From NCBI GenBank assembly GCA_009103225.1, contig RHPI01001567.1, positions 1-64,000 on the forward strand: 64,000 nucleotides of DNA, written 5' to 3'. Every line of letters starts with the position of its first letter. Position 1 is the stretch's first letter. Below the pieces are notes generated by a model. The model saw only the letters and a list, made by a program, of their open reading frames with translations. It was not told where the DNA came from and did not search any database. Shown here in pieces: positions 39,707-56,017 of this stretch. The translations under genes were made by a program, and so were the position numbers. The stretch is from Chlorokybus atmophyticus (taxonomy: Eukaryota > Plantae > Mesostigma and Chlorokybus algae).

Positions 39707-41800
39707 CTAGGTAAGGGTGCTCAAGTGTCTTGGGCGGTTTGGCCTTGTTCTCCAGCGTGCGCCCGCCTCCTTGGCCTGTGGGTTGGGGCTAGGATCAACA
39801 CGCAGGTGGCGCTCGGCGAATGCTTCTGCATAATCCCACAGGGGGTCGCCCAACTGGTTCTCACACATTCTTGGGTTCCACTCGTAGCGCATGATAATCT
39901 CTGCGGCTTCTCTGGCTGTCCTCTCTCTCTGTTCCAGCTCTGCTCGCCTTGCTTGTTCTTGTGCTACTTGCTTCTCTGCTGCTTCACGCTTTTCTTCAGC
40001 TTGTTCTTCAGCCCTTGCTTGCTTGCGCTGCTCTTTCTCCCTCTCTTTCAGCATCTTCTTGAGCGCAGATGCCTTCTTTTTGCTGCTGTTTTCTCTGCCC
40101 TGGCTGCAGCTTCTTGCTCTGCTTGTGTCTTGCGTTGCTTGGCTGCCTCTTTGCGTGCTTGAATTGCTTCAACTTTTGCTGCCTTCTCTGCATCCTGCCT
40201 CTCCAGCTCCTCAGCGATCTCTTCAGCAGTCAACAGCTGTGCTGTCGTCACACCCCTCCTTTTCTTGGCTGGTGCCTCTGTGTTGAGTGTGCTGTCCTCT
40301 GGGGCGTTGGGGTTGTTGTTTTCAGTTGCATCTCCTGCCTCTATCGCCTCCAGGAGGCATGAGAGGCCTGGGGGTGGTGGGGGTGCCTCTGTGTCCGTAA
40401 AGTACTTGTCCAATGCATGCTTGTTGAGCGGCCACAATCCACAAGCTCGAAAGCCTGCGATGATGTTGGCAGGGGACAGTCCAGTGTAGTAGGGGTTGAC
40501 GAGCAGCCTGAGGAATTCTTTGCGGTTGAGCTCGAAGTTGTACCTGGTTTCCATCCGCTTCCTATACTCCTTCCTGCATGCTTCCTTGAAAGGGTGGAAG
40601 CATGAAACGTCCAACACTTGCAGGCGGTGTGTTGTGTGTGGTGGCAAGACGAGGATGTGAAGTCCCTTGTCTTGTGCATAGCGGATCATGCGGGGGTTGT
40701 ACCTTGAAACGTGACCATCCACCACTAACAGCGCAGGCTTGGAAGGACTCACCCCTCCAGGAAACCACTCCACAACTTTGCGGATCCAGAGCTCAAAGAT
40801 ATCAGTTGTCATCCAAGCGTTCTCCTGCGCGGCGAACCTGGCTCCTGGGACGTCAAAGTCCTTGGCATCAACAGTAAGCCTCTGTCCTTTGATGATCACA
40901 AGAGGAGGTACTGCAAGTCCTGCTCCTGTGACTGCGCGCATCAACGTGATGTGCTCTCTGCTGCCCGTGGTTGAACATTGTGCCCACTTGGCTCCACTGC
41001 ATGCAACAGCACAATCAGCATTGCATGCTTGCATATGTATCTAAGTGGATAATGCATGTGTGCATACTTATGCGTAAGCAAAGCAACTGTGTACCTTTCG
41101 CAGATGATTCTTTGGTTTTGCATGCTAGTGTCTGGCTCTATCCCAACCTCGTCCGCTGATATGATACGCTCAGGTCCAACCCCCAGTTTGGTGACAGTCT
41201 CGGCCAGAAGCTCAAAGTAGTGGTACACAATGTCCTTGCGCAGGGAGACCCTCCTGGACTTATCAAGGGGTTCTGCCTTCCTGCTGGTCAACCCCTTCCT
41301 CCTTCTCAAACCAGAAAACCACTTCAGACTAGGTACTCCATTCATGAACAGGCTTGCTCTTTGATCACCCACAAGACGCTTGCCTGCCTCGATGCACACC
41401 TCCGTTCATGTTACTCCTCTCCCCCACTTATTGCGGAATATCACCCACTCTGCTAAGTCATTCTCTTCTGCCTCCGTAAAGATGGTGGCAGCACCTGGTC
41501 CCCTATTGTGCGTACACTTGTATTACACCCTATTGACTAACACTTCAGCTGGCAGTGCATAAGAAAGGGGCTTACTTGTAAAGGGAGAGGTCTGATTGAG
41601 CCAGGAACCTGCGCATGGTGGTGTCGGGGATGCCAAGATCTTTCACAGCATCACTGACTTGCATGCAGCCCTGGTTGATGGAGGAGACAGCCCTCTGAAT
41701 GTCCTCCATCCGGTCCTGGTATGTGGTGTAGTAACGCTTGCGCTTGTTGGCAGATGGGGTTTTGGCCTTCACTCGCTTGCCCTGGCCGAGTGCAGCAGAG
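39707..41800 (-). pseudogene. Spliced pogo DD35D transposase; TGG->TGA at 41406 and frameshift near 40078
   Basis: ADEVG; VDGHVS-35 aa-LD; same intron layout as copy A; GVT*TEV versus GVTWGEV in A. Confidence 0.88.
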
Positions 41801-42994
41801 TGCATCAGCACAAGGATGCAAACGAGGGTGGTCTGAGTGGCAACTGTCACAGTGATGACAAACATGCCAATGCATGTGCAACACCCACCCTTGCAGAGCT
41901 GCGAGTCACCATGCCCTAAGTTGTAGAAGTGGTAGAGTAGTTGTAGAAGTGGTAGAGTAGTTGTAACTTTGCTGCAGTAGCACTCTAATTGTGTAATGCA
42001 ACTCTGTTTGTCTCTCTCGGACTGCCACACATGCACTTTGCCTTCACACTCTCACTTGCTTGCCCTCTCCACACCCTCCCCGCTAACCTCACAGAAGCAT
42101 GACCTCACACCAACTGCAACACACACTCCACCAGTGAGTGATTGTGGGTGTGCAAAGTGCACTGCAACAACCAACAACACGCCCCACCAAGTTACAGCAT
42201 CCACAATAGCCATTTCTACAACTTCACTTTTTGATCAATGCGTTGCGCGTTATCCCCAATAATAGGGTCATGCTAACGCTCCCATTTTCGCGTGAAACTT
42301 CATGAAACTTGGTAAACAAGCTCTTAAAACCTATAAAAACCCAACAAAAAAAACACCATATCAACTGGCGTTTATACAAGAGAGTTATGATCAAACAAAA
42401 TATAGTAAGACAATACCCCGTTTGAATCAGCATAATTATTAAATTTAAAAATTCAAAACTCCCGCTCTACTTGGCCGTTTGGCAAGGTCTTAGGTTCGTT
42501 AGGTAGCTCTCGGCCAGCGCTATCCCGGCCTATATTCTGGCCGGCAAAGACCAACTAGACCGCCAGTTATGACCAAAAAACGGCCAATCTCCAAGTTAGG
42601 GCCCATTCCCAAGTTAGGGACATTTACCCTACCATGGTAGCATGATTTGAGTTTTGGTGATGGCATTGAGCTGTAGAGCGTGCATGATGTGGAAGCGTAA
42701 TTGGTCGTCACGTGCGTTACGCGCGTCATTTGTTTTGTTTAGAGGAGCCGCGCTTTGTTTCCGTGCTGCTTTACCATCAGCGGGCGGCCATGCAAATTGC
42801 AGACCCTTCCGCATTCAGTAAATGGTCCGCTTGGGACATGTACGCTTGGTGCAAGCGCCCTCAGCAGGTTGATGGTAGTACGACACGCATGTCAAGTACA
42901 ACAAGCACGCCATAGCATACCGCAATTCTACGGGATCTTCTGCGGTGCGCTGACAGGGACACTCTTCAGCGCCTACCGGTACATGTCATGTAAG

Positions 42995-43001: not shown

Positions 43002-43248
43002 GCAAGCGCATGCCTGGTGGGTTTGCTTGTTTGTTTGTTTGTTCAAGCTGCAACTGAGAGCGGCAGGCCAGCCGGTAACACGGTGCACTCCAGGCTCTCG
43101 CCTCGTCCGCGGCAGCCAACACCGCCGGTACGTGCGTGAACCGCTCTCTCTGTGTGTATGCACGTGTGCATGTCTGTGCGTGTGCGCCTTCTCATGGCAT
43201 GCGGCAGCAACAAGGCTCACTCACTGACAAGTGACAGCTGACAGAGAG

Positions 43249-46200
43249 ATGGCTCTCGGAGAACGGAAACACTCCCAGTCGCTGGCGCTGCTGCTGCTGC
43301 TAGCGGTGGTGGTGGTGCTGAGTGGGCACGTGGGCGCCCTCACCGTCGACGACTTGTACCCCTTCGGCCCTGCCAACGGCGACAAAATCATCAAGGCGTA
43401 AGCTTGCCATGCGCAGCAACTTGCAATTGTGTGACTGCATGCCTGCCTTCAGCACCTGTGCGCTCACCATAACTGACCTGCCATGCCAGATCGCACAGTG
43501 ATACTCACAACTGGCTTTGACTTCAGGGGCGATGACCTTGCTTCCGATCTGATCCCGCTGCCATACGCCGTGCCTGTGTTTGGCGACCCCAACGTGAAAG
43601 GAGCATATCTCAATCTGAACGGTGATAATGGTTTCTTGAAGATATATGCTGCCCCCCNNNNNNNNNNNNNNNNNNNNNNNNNNNNNNNNNNNNNNNNNNN
43701 NNNNNNNNNNNNNNNNNNNNNNNNNNNNNNNNNNNNNNNNNNNNNNNNNNNNNNNNNNNNNNNNNNNNNNNNNNNNNNNNNNNNNNNNNNNNNNNNNNNN
43801 NNNNNNNNNNNNNNNNNNNNNNNNNNNNNNNNNNNNNNNNNNNNNNNNNNNNNNNNNNNNNNNNNNNNNNNNNNNNNNNNNNNNNNNNNNNNNNNNNNNN
43901 NNNNNNNNNNNNNNNNNNNNNNNNNNNNNNNNNNNNNNNNNNNNNNNNNNNNNNNNNNNNNNNNNNNNNNNNNNNNNNNNNNNNNNNNNNNNNNNNNNNN
44001 NNNNNNNNNNNNNNNNNNNNNNNNNNNNNNNNNNNNNNCCGCACCCAACTTTCCCCCCACCGCCACCGCCACCGCCACAGAGCAAGCTCTGCTGCCTGTG
44101 CTATAACCTGCAGAATGGCACTCCAGACTTGAGGCGTGCATTCGTTGAGATTGCTCTTTCATGACGCCTTGGCTGAGGAGGAAGTTCTTGATTGGGTTGG
44201 CTCCATGCTTTGTGTGTTGTTTCAGCTTCCAACGCATTACTGCCTGCAGGCGCCCTGCATATGCAAGCTGCCAATGAAGATCACCGCCCCGAAAACAATC
44301 CGTTCCCCACTACTACGGCATATGGCTACAGCATGGTGGCAGCATTTTGGACCGACCTCTTTGTTGGTGACGACAGCGAAGTCGATGATGGTTGCAATGG
44401 ACATGCTTGCACCTTCGTGGCCTACCGCGCCGTTGGCAATGCTGACCTCCTCGCTACCATCACCAGTGACATACGTGGCATCTTCCCTCAAGAAGCACTC
44501 GCAGCGGGCTTCACGGCCGAGTCGGCGCTCATTGCAACATGGTTCAACGTGAGTGTGAACACGCACATGAGAGCGCGTCCGTGTGCGTGCTTGCATCTAT
44601 CTCCAATTGTGTGCGCGCATGCGAGTTTGTGCGCGTCCATATGCGAGTGTGTGGTGTGGTGATTGATGCTGAATGCGCGTGCACGCGTCTGCCTGCATGT
44701 GTGCGCGCACGCATGCGCGAACGTGTTGTGTGCGTGTTGTGGTGATTGATGCTGCAAGCTTCCTTGCTTATTGTGCAGGTGTCACAATGCTGCGACGAAC
44801 GCACGCCTTTCCGCAACACCTTTCAAGCAGTGATAGCCTTCAACACACGCACGGTGTTCGTGGGCTTGCTCTACCCCACGCTGACCTTCGGGGGCCCCTC
44901 AGGTGAGGCAAATTTGCTTGTTAGAGTCGTACAGATGTCCTGGCGGCGCACACATTACGTCAAACATGTGACGCTGACAATTGCGTGCTTGTTGCCGCAG
45001 TTCAAGCTGGATTCAACCTCGGTGATGGCATACACTCATTTCGGCTGCCCAGCTCTTTCTCCGGCGCGGCCACCTTCGATACGAATTCCAATGTCGGCCA
45101 GGTGAGCAAGCACGCATGCACTCTTTCGGTTGCCAGCTCTGCTCCTCATGTCATCGCGCACACGAATGTCATTTGCTTCCTGGCAGGCGGGCAAGTGGTG
45201 GTTTGGACTCGACTCCAGCAACCCAACCATCGGCACATTCAACTAGTGAGTGTCACACTGACACGCGCATGTAACCATTACATGCCTGTGTCATTGTGAC
45301 GTGCCGTGACGGCACGAAGTTGGGATAGCTGGACCAACACCAACATGCTCTTGCTAAGAAAGACTCTGTGTTTTTCGCAGCCTTGATGCACCGATCCCAT
45401 CTAAGGCATGTCAGCAAGTGCCGCTGTATGGAGATACGGGCGTGGACGCGTGCGGCAACCAGCAAGCAATGGATTGGGACCTCAACAATGACGGCGCCTT
45501 CGACGACGCGACGGGTACAACCAGACCTGTCATTGACACCCAAATCTTGCGGTTGACCCCTGGCACATATCCTATCAGCGCCCGGGTCAGATCCGCCCCG
45601 CCATGCCCCGGCGCCGCTTCCAACCCGCTGCTCAGCACAGCTCTCATTCTGACCGGGACGACGCCCACCATCTTCAACATACGCTTAGACCCAGCAAACG
45701 GCAATCCTAAACCGATGGTTGGCGAGGCTATTAGCATCACCCTGAACATAGACATCATATTCTGCAATAACGCCACTACAACCATTGACTGCGGTGCAGA
45801 CTCCATTGCGGTGCGTGTGCATGCCCCCCCCCNNNNNNNNNNNNNNNNNNNNNNNNNNNNNNNNNNNNNNNNNNNNNNNNNNNNNNNNNNNNNNNNNNNN
45901 NNNNNNNNNNNNNNNNNNNNNNNNNNNNNNNNNNNNNNNNNNNNNNNNNNNNNNNNNNNNNNNNNNNNNNNNNNNNNNNNNNNNNNNNNNNNNNNNNNNN
46001 NNNNNNNNNNNNNNNNNNNNNNNNNNNNNNNNNNNNNNNNNNNNNNNNNNNNNNNNNNNNNNNNNNNNNNNNNNNNNNNNNNNNNNNNNNNNNNNNNNNN
46101 NNNNNNNNNNNNNNNNNNNNNNNNNNNNNNNNNNNNNNNNNNNNNNNNNNNNNNNNNNNNNNNNNNNNNNNNNNNNNNNNNNNNNNNNNNNNNNNNNNNN

Positions 46201-46269
46201 NNNNNNNNNNNNNNNNNNNNNNNNNNNNNNNNNNNNNNNNNNNNNNNNNNNNNNNNNNNNNNNNNNNNN

Positions 46270-46345
<76 letters not shown>

Positions 46346-47388
46346 TCCCTCTGTCTCCCTCTCTCGCTCCCTCTCTCGCTCTGGTCATGACAAGCGGTGT
46401 TACCTGCGCGCGCGTGCATGCGGGCACATGCCTGAAGCCATGCGTGCGCGCACAACAGTACAAGTAAAGTGTACATGTGCTTGCCTTTCGGTATGAGTTA
46501 TCTGAGCGCTCGCCAGCAACACGTGTCATGTGCAGGGAGAGGCAGAAGGCAGCTGTCGGTACAGCACCCCTGGAGTCAAGAACATCACCGTCACCATCAT
46601 GCAGCACGGCTTGAGCACCTCCGGCACTACAAGCATTAGTGTTGTGGAGTACAAGCAAGCATGCAGCCCGTACGTCAAAGATGCCCGCATAGCACGCATT
46701 GTCTTGTCAGCTCTGACGCCATGGTTGTTTTGCTACGTGCATTAGAGCGGAGTATCCCCCCAATGGAAGAGCCGTTGGGCAGCGGGGCTGTCCCCAAGTT
46801 TACTGGGAATCGGGATACTATGCGTGCAACTACCCCGCCCACATCAAGCCCTCCACGCGACTGTGGGTGGCGTTCGCAAGCAGCGCTGCGGAAGATGCGG
46901 CCGTCATCCGACGCTTGTACGGCAACCGCACTATGATACAGGCCCTGCGCAAGTACAACAGCAAAGACCAGGTTGGCTGAGATGAGAGGTGTTATGGTGT
47001 GTTATGGTTGCAACATTTTGTCAATCCAGTGTAACGAGAGGCTGGTTATCTTGCAGGCGAATCTGTTTGCAAGCGAGGCTGCTGCGGCACTGCTCAACGC
47101 CTTAACACTGGCGTACCCGCAGTGCCCTCTCGCTGTTAAGCTCAAATTCCGCCATGCTCTGTATCGCGGCGTCTCCTCGACAGAGGGTGAGTCTCTCTCT
47201 CTCTCTCCCTCTCCCTCTCCCTCTCGCTCTCTCGCTCCCCCGTGCGTGAGGGAAGTTGACTCAACCAAACATCCTTGATGGGTTACTTATCGCTGTGGCA
47301 CTATGCAGCGCGCACAGTCTACAACACCTTTCTCTACCACAACAACGCTATTCAAGGATGCACCCTGCCTTTTTGTCAAGATAAGTGA
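43249..47388 (+). CDS. Secreted protein: signal peptide + NIDO + two PKD-like domains + PDF1/meiosis-5-like C-terminal domain (11 or more exons, two gaps)
   Basis: Predicted exons: 43249-43397, 43527-(gap 43658), 44250-44548, 44779-44902, 45001-45101, 45187-45245, 45381-45810, 46536-~46648, ~46746-46971, 47057-47186, 47309-47388. Most junctions are phase-consistent GT-AG. Motifs: LYPFG..GD, AAFWTDL, IATWFNV, NTFQAV, QAGFNLGDG, SNVG..GKW, WDLNNDGAFDDATG, YSTPGVKNITVT, EAAAALLNA..YP. Confidence 0.82.
43658..44039. other. Assembly gap
   Basis: Run of N flanked by C-rich sequence. Confidence 0.99.
45833..46269. other. Assembly gap followed by (CT)n
   Basis: Run of N. Confidence 0.99.
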
Positions 47389-48339
47389 GGTTGATCACCT
47401 GCAGCTAAATCCCTTTGCTAAGACATTGCTGATTTTGGTCACTCCAACTTGAATATGTCAAGTGTCATGGTGAATGGTAGTTGAAGTCATGTTGAGTATC
47501 GAACTACAAACGCTGGTGCCCATGTCTTAGAGCGTCGTAGCGCTTGTTAGGGGTATGCAATTATAGCAATAAAAGTGCGTTTTTGTACAGTGTACGTAGC
47601 GTCATGCAGCATTAATAACGACCATGACAAGGTCACAACTAAACTGCGACAAGTGACATGTACTACAAGCAGCAGTAATGTATATATTGCTTTACGGCTA
47701 TATCATTTCTTTCTTTCTCTTTCTCGTGTTTGGGAATCGCATAACGAACACCTTGTCGTGATGTGTACAACAATGCAAGGATACAATAGTAACAGTGTTA
47801 TCATGAGCAGGCGAGGCGAGTATAACAACGGTAAAAACCTTTTTTTGTATACTTCTGTAACACTACTGCGTTATCTTCTCAAGCATGTATGAAGACTACT
47901 GGCATACTTGCAGCAGCAGTGTGCACGACCTGAGTGTATGACATAGAAGCATCGGGGCGTGTCGGAGAAATAGAGGGAGAGAGTTGTCGTCCTGCATGCT
48001 GCTGCTGTTGCTTTGCTGCCCATTGCCAACCATGCCCATGTGGTCAGGTGAACACAAACCTGCATGGTTGCTGTATGACTAACGGGTCAGGCAAAGTTGA
48101 CGTAGCATAGAGAGTGCTGGCATGGTGGTGAGTCATATGTTGTAAACTAATAACGCGAGGTGGTGCATGTCACTTGTATGTCTCAGCACACCAGGCATGC
48201 CGACATAGCAGCATACCCCTTTTGTATACACATCTGAGCGTATATCTGCTTGGTACAACAGCCACCACGTCATGCACAATAACAGAGCTGCAGCAACCTC
48301 TGAAAACTATCGTACGTTGCCCAAAAACACGGTGTACGC

Positions 48340-49698: not shown

Positions 49699-50605
<907 letters not shown>

Positions 50606-51148: not shown

Positions 51149-53703
51149 TTACGTCTGACACAAGCGTGCATCTTTGGGGTTCAGCAACCGTACGGTGTCT
51201 TCAGTTGTCCTCCAGCCTTGAGTGGTGGCAGCCTTGAGGAAGGCAGGGAACCGCAGGCGCGTGTCAACATGGCCAGCCACAATGGCGTCCTGCACTTCCG
51301 CTGGAAGGTAACCTCTGTGGTGGTGCCAAGAGTGCTGAGATGTGCTTGAAATTGAAGCCGCCGGCGCAGACGCCGCGTGCATGTGTGTCGCGGAACCCTT
51401 GGAGAACTGTGATGTATGCATCCGGCGGAGTTTTTGCAAGTGGTGCAAAGTGGCATGGCCCTGCGTGCAGCGCAGTGTTGAGTAACTTGCATGAGACCAT
51501 ACAAGACCATACATATGCGGGCATGCATGCGGCCTCTTACGCAATCACAACAACCTAAGTCTAGCAAGCTCGGCTTGAGTTTAGTCGCAACAACCACCTA
51601 ACAATGAATACAGAGAGCTGGATGAATACAACTTGCCTGGAATGCTGCGCGCAGTATATCTTCTGGTGACGCGTTATCTTTCAACACAACAAACACTTTC
51701 CTCTTGTCCAGGCGGTATGTTACAAGGTACGACTCGTCCCTGAAGGTCTGCGCTGCCATCTTGAAGGCCTCCGCTGTTGGGAAGGCTTCGCTCACCCTGG
51801 CACCCAACTCCATCGGCCGATGCCGCGCCCACGGGAACACGCACAGAGCCTCGCTCTTATTCGCATCCTTGGGAGGCATTACTTCCCCTGAGAGACAGTC
51901 AATCTCAAACCATGATCATCATCACAATGCCATTCACTGCTGCATTGTTGGTGTCACAAACAATGCGTACCATCTTCAAGGTAGCGGTTGGCGACGACTT
52001 CAAGGCGCGAGCGGTTGAGTGTGGGTATTTGCACGCTTCTGACCTCGCGATAGGAGCCAAATATGTAGCCCGCGGCAAGGGTCCCGTAAGTGGCCCAGAG
52101 TGCAGATGAGTGGCGCCGCGACAGGCAGATGCCAATGCCCGTCCCCACCAGATCAGCCAGGTTGCTCACACTCTCGCCCTTCGCCGTGATGTCACCCAGG
52201 TTCTCGCTGCGTGCAAACGCCTTGTATATCGGTGCCCGTGTGGACGACGCTGTCACAGCAGCCAGATTCTGCAATGCATGATGCGAGTCCTTCAGTTGTG
52301 GCTGATTGCTGTTGTTGTGGCAATTTCATATTGCAACAACTCACCAAGAGCTGATTGTGTTTGCCAGCAGCACAACACTACTACACATTGATGCTGTATG
52401 CACACACCCTTCACACCTGCACAATCATGCACAAGTGCACGCACATGCAATGCGCGTTCTGCATACAGTGTACCTTGGCTAGGTTTGCACAGCATGCGAG
52501 CGGTAGGAAGTATCGCGGGAAGAAGGCTGTGGCGAGCTCGACGGATGCGCCGCCCATCATGAGGACATTGCCAGCGAAGCGGAACTGCTTGAGCTCGCAG
52601 TCAAACTTCTTCCCTTGGCGGGCGAACAGCATCTTGCCGAGACGGCCGGCACCGTCCTTAATGGCCCAGTTAACAGCCACAGCCGCAGCTGCGGGAGCGT
52701 GGCCGCGGTTTGGAGCACCAACAGCAGACAAAAGCGCCCGCGTCGTGAACACGCTCAAAGCCCCTCCAAATAAATACTGCACAGGAAACGACACACAAAC
52801 ATCAGAGATCGGTCAAGCGCGAACAGTCACATCCTGAAATGCAGCTGGCTGTTTAAGCTGATGATCCAACATACTCAGCACTTGATCAAATATCAAAGCA
52901 GTATAGTGCACACTGATTTAGTTGCGTTGTGCTACACCACAATTCACTGCTAGAATGCACGGTACTGAGCCATGGTTGCTGCTTTTACTGTTGATTTTGA
53001 CTACTTCACAGTGCACCAGTCTCATTGTCTCATCTGCGTTGTTTTGCACCTGCACAGCCCTCCATCGCATGTAGGGCGCAAAGTCCGGTGAGACGGTGGC
53101 CGGGTAGCCGTCTGGCAGGATCCATGAGCAGCACCATGCCTTCATCGACTGTACCAGGCGCCGGGATCTGTCCGTAACCACCTCAACGACCTCAAAATCA
53201 GCCTCGCTTCGACTTCGACTTCTACTGCTACTTAGACTCTTACTGCTATTCCTATTTACAAGCCCTTTTCTATGCCCATGCCCGCCCTTCCGCCTGCCAC
53301 TCTCCCCCCTGGCGAAGTACATGTGGCACCGCCCATTGCTGATCTCGAAGCAGAGAGGCTGATCTTCCTGTGCTTCGTCTCCTCCTCGTCCTTCCCCTGC
53401 TCCTGCTACGGCTCCTCTGCCTGCTGACCGTCCGCTGGTCTGGGCCGGCGGACTGCTGTGCAATGCATCCAGAGTTTGCTCGTGCAGTGCTGATGTAGAT
53501 GATGATGCCGCCGTAGGCGCCACGCGAGAGTTGCTGCTGTTCCGGTGCTGCAGCCGAAGCTGGAGAGGTGAGCAGCCGGGCCTCCATGCCGCTTGTGGCG
53601 GCATAGAAGACGAGCCTGAGGAGGAAGAGGAGGCCGACGATGACGAGGAGGAGGCGGACGACGAGGCAGCCGGCGCCGAGCTCTTGCAATTGGAGAACGC
53701 CAT
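51149..53703 (-). CDS. RUS2: Root UVB sensitive 2-like (DUF647/RUS family) with Ser-rich transit-peptide-like N-terminus; 5 exons
   Basis: Exons 53703-53050, 52776-52474, 52268-51971, 51887-51637 and 51460-51149. Motifs ILPDGYPATVS..YMRW, AVNWAIKDGAGRLGKMLFARQGKKFD, NLAAVTASSTRAPIYKAF..ENLGDITAKGE, TLNRSR, ELGAR, DILRAAF, GWR..LLNPK.ARL match Arabidopsis RUS2 as recalled. The frame is intact. Confidence 0.93.
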
Positions 53704-56017
53704 CTGCGTGCAATGCTTTGAAATCACAACAGCCTCCTTTACCGAGGACTTGACTCACTACCCTCCTATCTCCGCCCCTGCGCTACGCTTACACCAACCA
53801 TCCCACCGCCGCCGCCGTTGCCGCCAGATTGCTCCACCTGTACCAGGTTGTTCGTCCCACCTTTGACATCTCACTTGGCTCCGATATCACTACACTACAA
53901 AATGTCGGGTGTGCTCAGATGGTACCTGCTGGACGCGAAGAAGGCGATATCATGCGGTTGATGGTGGATTTCCGGCATAGTACAGTGTGAGGTGCCACGC
54001 TGGAGTGGAAACCGCGCGCGATTTGAACGGAGCGGCGGACGGCGCACTGGCCAATTGGGCGGCCCATGGTACGCGCCACCACGTCAGCGCCAGCGGTGGA
54101 CGGGATGATAGAGGAAAAGTGGACGGCAGAGGCTCGCGGACCGCCATGCGAACGTCGCATGATGCGGCGTCACGGACCGTGACATGGTCACGGTCACATA
54201 ACACCTTGCTACAACATACACTTAACCTTACTTGCCTGTACTTGACTCTATACAAGTTAGTTATCATTTCGCCCTATGCTGCTCGCAGCAGCCTGGTCGC
54301 TCCTATGAAAGAAGAAGTAGACTGCTGTGAAACTAATTAATGAAGTTAATAATCATGCGTTAGTGTAAGTGGTGTTGCGGCGTTCAACAGCTAGTTAATA
54401 CGATGACAGCATCTTTAAGTTTATGATTTACAGTGTAATATATAGGGAGCTACTGTACTTCATGACACGGTTAGGCTCCAGTGCTATAACACTATGCATA
54501 GCTTGATTAGTAAGCTATGTGTTATGCATTTGCTTGTGTGCAACTTGTGTGATTAAAGCACGAGCGTGAAACTCAAAGCAACCGCTCGCGATGTTTATCT
54601 GACCGACCTTTGATACAATAAGAACACCTTATCACACACCGCATTATAAGTTATGCTGCATGGAACACGCACAACCGAGCACACGCAATAAATGCATACC
54701 CTTTCGATTGCATCGCCACCGCACACACGCAATGCACTACACTCGCTCGATACGGATGCAACTTAAACAGCGTGCACAGCACCGGCCACAAAATATTAAT
54801 GTGCATTGTGTTAACACGAGGGGCACCTTCAGGGGTCAATGTTGGCGTCCAAAGCTATAGTCAACACTTGTCGTGTAACAGTCGAGGCCAATAATCATGT
54901 TTTCAGGATCTTTTTCAGCCTTATTTGTCGAACATCATGTTTTCACGACTTTTGGTGAATATTGGCGAGTTGTGTGCGAGTCTGTCGCAGATATTGACCG
55001 GGGCTAAGGACCAGTCTGGAAGCCGCCAGAAAACGGAGGGCCAGTCGAGAAGGGCCCGACCAGATTTCAGGAACGGCCTGGCGCCAAATAGTATAAGTTG
55101 GTCATACGGGCACCAAATGAAGAGTTCTTTGGTGTGTAGGAAAGGTCTGGGAGGGTATTACACGATTGTGCAAGTTTGATTTATTAGCTTCTAATTCCGT
55201 CTAGCGCAAGAATCGTTCAGACAGTAGCATGTGCAGACCGGTAGGTATAAAAGAGACAGTTCATTATGTGCAATACAACCTTTATCGCCCTGGTTTCTTG
55301 TGTGCAAGCTTGTTGGTAGTTAGCAGTGATTGCTAGCGTGTGTCCACTAGTGTGAGCTTGCTTGTATGACGATGCAAGGCGCTACACAAGTTGGTGTGTA
55401 GCTTCGAGCGCATGCGCGTGGGCACGCAAGTGGCGGGGCGCGTGTGTGCGTGGCAGAGGGGGCAAGGTTCTGGTGTGAATACCGTGTCTTGGTGAGAGGG
55501 TTGTTGATTGGATTGTTGATTGCCAACTCACAGGTAGCAAGGCACAAGCACCGTCACAGGTCGTGCCTTCATGAATTCACTGTTTGTAGCATCTAGATAC
55601 CTTGCGCAACTTATAGGCGTCGATGAGGGCCCCATCTACAATTAGTGTTACTAATTGGATTCTGCAACAACGACCGCCGAGGCGCGTGCAACACTTAATA
55701 TCGACGATGACGAGCAATACAATATCGACCGCAACATGTCATAATGCTATAGTGGATCGCCCACATAAATGCCGTCCATGGCAACAACCGTACTGTTTAA
55801 TAATAAAAAGTTGTCGTATATATACGACACGAGTATATTTGATAAAAGGGGTCAACTTGATCTTCTTCCCTTTGCGGCTGCGCCACTTTTCTGGTAGCTC
55901 GTCCCATGCATACACTGTAAAGCCTCCCAACTTGGAGACCAGCCACTCGAGCTGCGCACACAATCGAGCAGGCAACTCATTTGGAATGCGCAATTTGTTT
56001 CTTGGTTCAACACAATC

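Follow-up and report, generated by a model that had tools for sequence, protein, structure and literature searches.

The 64,000 nucleotides of contig RHPI01001567.1 of Chlorokybus atmophyticus considered here (GenBank assembly GCA_009103225.1, positions 1 to 64,000; this whole stretch is called the window below) carry, at positions 43249-47388 of the forward strand, an expressed nuclear gene of an early-branching streptophyte alga. Its product is predicted to be a secreted protein that joins a signal peptide, a NIDO domain, two PKD-like domains and a C-terminal module resembling the C-terminal domain of protodermal factor 1 (PDF1_C), and on balance we favor a component of the extracellular matrix or cell wall as its most likely role. 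Should this module truly be PDF1_C, a domain of land-plant epidermal and cuticle-ledge proteins would be placed in a streptophyte alga from among the earliest branches, where it is combined with modules that are more familiar in matrix proteins of animals and surface proteins of bacteria. This would provide a testable handle on the assembly of plant extracellular proteins before the colonization of land, and on the biochemistry of PDF1_C. The value of the finding depends on this link; should the fold match be fortuitous, the gene would represent an uncharacterized, expanded family of algal surface proteins of one lineage.

Transcript structure of the gene

We aligned contigs of four public RNA runs from one organism to positions 43100-47600 of the window; the runs X1, X2 and X3 stem from two studies. 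Contigs of these three runs match the genomic DNA at 95-100% and contain none of the predicted introns, and in run X2 a loose contig end of 24 A residues follows position 47587, so that mRNA that had been spliced and polyadenylated must be their source. They define a coding region of 11 exons on the plus strand (1824 nucleotides, 608 amino acids) in which the reading frame is kept throughout, and all ten coding introns possess GT..AG ends. The transcript starts upstream of position 43126. The gene is composed of the following elements:

43127-43243 (+): intron in the 5' untranslated region (joint 43126>43244 with GT..AG ends, present in X2 and X3)
43249 (+): start codon ATG, from the translation
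43249-43338 (+): predicted signal peptide of about 30 amino acids, from the translation and a hydropathy scan
43249-43397, 43527-43621, 44250-44548 and 44779-44902 (+): coding exons 1-4, from contig joints
45001-45101, 45187-45245, 45381-45810 and 46536-46669 (+): coding exons 5-8, from contig joints
46746-46971, 47057-47186 and 47309-47385 (+): coding exons 9-11, from contig joints
47386-47388 (+): stop codon TGA; the 3' untranslated region then extends to the poly(A) site at 47587
43658-44038: assembly gap 1 (N), within intron 2 (43622-44249)
45833-46269: assembly gap 2 (N), within intron 7 (45811-46535), with a (CT)n microsatellite next to it (46270-46385)

Contigs of X1, X2 and X3 bridge both assembly gaps: gap 1 by the joint 43621>44250, with 94 letters on its shorter side, and gap 2 by the exon 7-exon 8 joint 45810>46536, with 135 letters on its shorter side. 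As both gaps are thus intronic, the coding sequence is complete and belongs to a single gene; at neither gap have residues been lost in comparison with the paralogous proteins. Overlapping contigs link exons 1-3, 3-5, 4-8 and 8-11. An original prediction, made from the letters of the window, had proposed a secreted multi-exon gene with these very ends on the plus strand. Its outline is borne out by the spliced contigs, in which the introns are removed, 11 exons are joined and both gaps are bridged, while secretion of the product is predicted from the translation (see below). That one gene, and not two, extends across 45833-46269 follows from the contigs of three runs that span this gap. The proposed reading of exon 2 into gap 1 has to be abandoned, since the transcripts splice out at 43621. 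Of the motifs quoted in the prediction, each one occurs in the sequence: a start with LYPFG, WDLNNDGAFDDATG, and the pattern C..YW...AALLNA...C.L..C. A second copy of the gene was not found in the 64-kb window in tblastn searches with all exons.

Further contigs from X6, X1 and X3 match only short conserved stretches (43330-43368, 45184-45463 and 46644-46790) and then diverge, and one of them continues with an MDWDLDND-type reading. Such contigs represent transcripts of paralogues, unless they come from a sister species that carries the same organism label in the archive. Odd joints in X1 and X6, with non-canonical ends and sides of 23-25 letters, were attributed to transcripts of paralogues that cross-mapped to the gene.

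Domains and gene family

An exhaustive HMMER search with exon 9 among 1.84 billion representatives yielded six proteins, five of which are from Chlorokybus atmophyticus. These five are predicted proteins from EukProt EP00898 / JGI Chlat1 that bear neither a name nor a description. The sixth, P0007, a bacterial fn3/amidase protein, was regarded as a spurious match (seven short stretches, 28% identity) and discarded. Four of the Chlorokybus proteins are referred to in the following:

P0002 (Chrsp33S05072): NIDO, five repeat units and end module
P0005 (Chrsp86S07998): NIDO, one repeat unit and end module, a layout equal to that of the window gene
P0003 (Chrsp31S04786): three repeat units and end module, without NIDO
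P0006 (Chrsp29S04468): truncated

All 11 exons of the window gene are collinear with P0002 and P0005, and their identity to the Chlorokybus relatives ranges from 27 to 70%, which marks the latter as paralogues or distant orthologues and not as the same gene. The modules and their order are those of the window gene, whereas the number of repeat units and the presence of NIDO vary. A word search with the whole of P0005 yielded P0005 itself and one weak NIDO protein. As judged from sequence comparisons, the gene is consequently one member of a family with multiple copies that has so far been seen in the Chlorokybus lineage alone. Each of its module types is known already, and the public proteome of Chlorokybus atmophyticus contains their combination, though under no name. 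The original prediction had stated that no described protein of such an architecture was known. In the literature, we found no publication that describes it, and none that connects NIDO and PDF1 with Chlorokybus; the nearest was a remark on Zygnema in a domain survey (PMC11096116).

The domains of the encoded protein, read from its N- to its C-terminus, are located as follows:

43339-45245 (+), exons 1-6: NIDO domain with a LYPFG-type N-terminal extension, from Pfam PF06119 and paralog tiling
45381-45651 (+), first 90 residues of exon 7: PKD-like beta-sandwich domain 1, from similarity to P0001 and the model of a paralogous unit
45472-45516 (+): putative calcium-binding loop DWDLNNDGAFDDATG of the DxDxDG type, from the family alignment and the model
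45652-46669 (+), end of exon 7 (to 45810) and exon 8 (46536-46669): PKD-like beta-sandwich domain 2
46746-47385 (+), exons 9-11: five-Cys helical module, PDF1_C-like, from paralog identity and a model

The first 30 residues combine a basic n-region with a 13-residue Leu/Val/Ala core and V-G-A ahead of the likely cleavage site, and hydropathy peaks at 3.76 in residues 14-24. The exon translations contain 16 Cys residues, an even count, and three N-x-S/T sequons, as befits a secreted protein. No transmembrane, signaling or enzyme domain is encoded by the window gene, and the protein is predicted to be secreted.

Exon 3 on its own reaches 30.6 bits against the Pfam NIDO model PF06119 (profile positions 22-87; cut-off 25), and exon 4 follows collinearly with 19.9 bits (profile positions 99-122). 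In P0002, the domain scores 96.1 bits over profile positions 3-183 of 186. Exons 1-6 tile residues ~60-306 of P0002 and the N-terminal region of P0005, and no block is missing at gap 1. The NIDO domain, which the original prediction had taken to be complete, is thus confirmed as such and is uninterrupted by gap 1. With the animal NIDO proteins nidogen, alpha-tectorin, mucin-4 and SNED1, the window protein has the domain and an extracellular setting in common; it differs from them in that none of their accompanying modules is present and in that its host is an alga. As regards streptophyte algae, NIDO has been reported to occur in filamentous Zygnema and to be missing from land plants (PMC11096116). 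On a 3-kb metagenomic Logan contig (L001, positions 700-2295), NIDO and a GDSL-type lipase domain are encoded together by an intron-less gene of 531 amino acids, so that the domain is also found in non-animal DNA of prokaryote-like character.

Exons 7 and 8 align end to end with one repeat unit of the family, without loss of a residue at gap 2. The homologous unit of P0002 (residues 495-676) was modeled from a 12-row alignment with a predicted local distance difference test (pLDDT) of 90.6 and consists of two beta-sandwich domains, a predicted structure with the PKD-type beta-sandwich fold. Foldseek matches for this model are generic tandem immunoglobulin (Ig), cadherin and fn3 pairs, and the nearest match of domain 2 is the S-layer PKD domain 1l0q; a PDB sequence search with the repeat unit gave chance-level matches only. 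When exon 7 was used in a word search via a gap-spanning open reading frame (ORF), the sole match was P0001, a PKD-repeat protein of bacterial or metagenomic origin, and a weak one at the level of the database (E 3.4e-4); the pairwise E values to two P0001 domains are 5e-8 and 3e-7, at 38-43% identity over 42-71 residues, and these domains are themselves near-threshold K319L-like PKD domains. The unit has the beta-sandwich fold in common with the PKD-repeat surface proteins of bacteria and archaea (P0001, 1l0q), and domain 1 also shares with the P0001 domains a WD.(D/N)NDG.F.DA.G loop. In contrast to these proteins, the Chlorokybus family possesses a fixed pair of two unlike domains and conserved cysteines.

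Residues D33, D37 and G38 of the loop in domain 1 are nearly invariant among the aligned repeat units, and in the modeled unit the motif forms a loop right after strand 29-33. This DxDxDG-type loop probably binds calcium. On the WD.DNDG.FDD loops of P0002 and P0003, sub-threshold Pfam matches to GEVED and TSP_3 were observed, which is consistent with a calcium-loop motif common to several bacterial and animal types of repeats. The unit formed by exons 7 and 8 measures 564 nucleotides and is flanked on both sides by phase-2 introns. Because of this symmetry it could be duplicated or lost in frame, which fits the existence of paralogues with 1, 3 and 5 units.

The C-terminal module, the proposed role and its alternatives

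The C-terminal module of the window protein is 44-67% identical to its counterparts in five Chlorokybus proteins. In a shape search of the ESM Atlas with the model of the P0002 module, four of the 30 nearest models stand out. These are bacterial hypothetical proteins, with template modeling (TM) scores of 0.60-0.64, and one Streptophyta cluster termed 'Protodermal factor 1 C-terminal domain-containing protein' (100% PF27764), with TM 0.60/0.56 over 107 aligned residues and a root mean square deviation of 2.9, a comparison with predicted structures on both sides. The other rows among these 30 lie between TM 0.44 and 0.30. A language-model search is led by bacterial small proteins (score 0.91), and at rank 8 it lists a bacterial cluster with PF27764 in 11% of its members. 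Since PF27764 is annotated in this bacterial Atlas cluster and since bacterial proteins match the fold as well, our data suggest that PDF1_C is not confined to land plants. This qualifies the original prediction, which had called the PDF1-like domain a land-plant one.

PDF1 and FOCL1 are proteins of the land-plant epidermis and cuticle ledge. In the land-plant PDF1/FOCL1-type proteins (PF27764), the module likewise occupies the C-terminus of a secreted protein, and we take them to share with the window module a Cys..W start and an AALLN-type helix. Their N-terminal region is proline-rich, unlike the NIDO and Ig-like domains of the window protein. No match to the module exons was found in NCBIfam or in a local copy of Pfam that is without the PF27764 model, no PDB entry matched the module by sequence or by fold, and an Atlas feature search with exon 9 alone gave no usable match. 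Patterns of the module were encountered in 44 stretches in a scan of bacterial and archaeal genomes, none of which was confirmed as a relative. On the basis of the predicted fold, we regard homology between the algal module and PDF1_C as probable.

All module types of the protein are extracellular, its number of Cys residues is even, and it has no membrane anchor or enzyme domain, which argues for a secreted protein associated with the matrix or the wall. The cell packets of this alga are held together by an extracellular matrix or wall, and the protein would most likely be one of its structural or adhesive components. Its Ig-like units would act as a calcium-stiffened spacer, flanked by the NIDO and PDF1_C-like ends as binding modules, and such a spacer between binding ends would serve the cohesion of the cell packets or the assembly of the wall. 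With about even chances, one can go a step further and propose that the algal module is truly homologous to the PDF1_C domain of PDF1 and FOCL1, that this domain was a swappable C-terminal end near the base of the streptophytes and was joined to NIDO and calcium-loop Ig-like units in a cell-packet matrix, and that its ultimate source was a widespread family of bacterial small proteins.

Several points weigh against the favored interpretation of the gene, its protein and its role. Among the transcript joints, the one between exons 8 and 9 is the weakest link. Its exon 8 side spans just 26 letters, fewer than the 31 that our rule demands on the shorter side; in its favor, the reading frames match and the paralogous proteins align across it without a break in collinearity. 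The signal peptide is a reading of sequence and hydropathy. Neither of exons 7 and 8 is matched by the Pfam models PKD (PF00801) and PKD_4 (PF18911) when matches with E<=10 are admitted, and Pfam PKD models miss their threshold in 11 of the 12 repeat units of the family; the E values of the remaining unit are 0.031 for PKD and 0.11 for PKD_4. From the PKD repeat and the second PKD-like repeat of the original prediction, two PKD-like beta-sandwich domains consequently remain; the label 'PKD-like' is justified, and membership in the Pfam PKD family is not. The matrix role itself is argued from domain types only.

The remaining objections concern the C-terminal module. The AF2 model of this module from P0002, built on a six-row alignment, is all-helical and of moderate confidence, with a pLDDT of 60.6 and a predicted TM score of 0.59. 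In a word search with the module profile, covering proteins of 104-331 amino acids (5808 candidates), only family members and no plant protein appeared at E<=10. PF27764 is missing from the precomputed Pfam lists of P0005 and P0006, whose release may lack that model; in these lists, the module part of both proteins is blank. The proposed PDF1-like module can consequently be upheld with respect to the predicted fold, which matches that of the Streptophyta PDF1_C cluster, but this agreement is at the level of the fold, without a plant match in sequence.

These same observations lend some weight to a different reading, in which the module is a Chlorokybus-specific, Cys-bearing helical domain unrelated to PDF1_C, and in which convergence, or a weak model, accounts for the match in fold and for the AALLN-type motif. 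The exhaustive search with exon 9 points in the same direction, as it retrieved only Chlorokybus proteins after P0007 had been set aside, and TM scores near 0.5-0.6 are rather easily reached by small helical domains. However, among the 30 nearest Atlas models a TM score of 0.6 is attained only by the bacterial clusters and by the PDF1_C cluster, with unrelated rows at 0.30-0.44, and the independent language-model search also lists a cluster bearing PF27764. We therefore consider an unrelated domain possible, yet rather unlikely.

With respect to function, the main rival of a matrix role is a surface protein for recognition or defense, in which microbes or foreign polymers would be the ligands of NIDO, the Ig-like domains and the end modules, and diversifying selection would have driven the expansion of the family. 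The existence of multiple copies with a variable number of repeats and only 30-65% identity between them would be in keeping with such a function, as would the resemblance of the beta-sandwich domains to domains of bacterial surface proteins. The protein has no transmembrane or signaling part, however, so its action would be restricted to the extracellular space, and overall we regard recognition or defense as improbable.

Finally, an artefact of the gene model (contamination with bacterial DNA, the merging of two genes over a gap, or the loss of coding sequence within one), to which the two N gaps in the span and the bacterial look-alikes of the PKD-like domains and the end modules might point, is highly improbable, given that spliced contigs bridge both gaps without a loss of residues relative to the paralogs, that ten introns with GT..AG ends were observed together with a poly(A) tail, and that no relative of the module emerged from the scan of bacterial and archaeal genomes.

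Surroundings of the gene in the window

About 2 kb upstream of the gene, an ORF of 328 amino acids on the minus strand (40051-41034) encodes a DDE_1 (pogo-type) transposase (67.6 bits, Pfam); the ORFs adjoining it (40944-42036) have no Pfam match. Downstream of the gene lies a (CT)n/(GA)n microsatellite of ~0.9 kb (about 49700-50605) that ends at a single N (50606). Shorter CT tracts are present beside gap 2 (46270-46385) and in intron 10 (47180-47242), and CT repeats may have caused the assembly gaps. Further downstream, an ORF on the minus strand (52921-53727) exhibits a weak Pfam match to UVB_sens_prot (RUS/DUF647-type; 27.6 bits versus a cut-off of 28.3) and is probably one exon of a neighboring gene.

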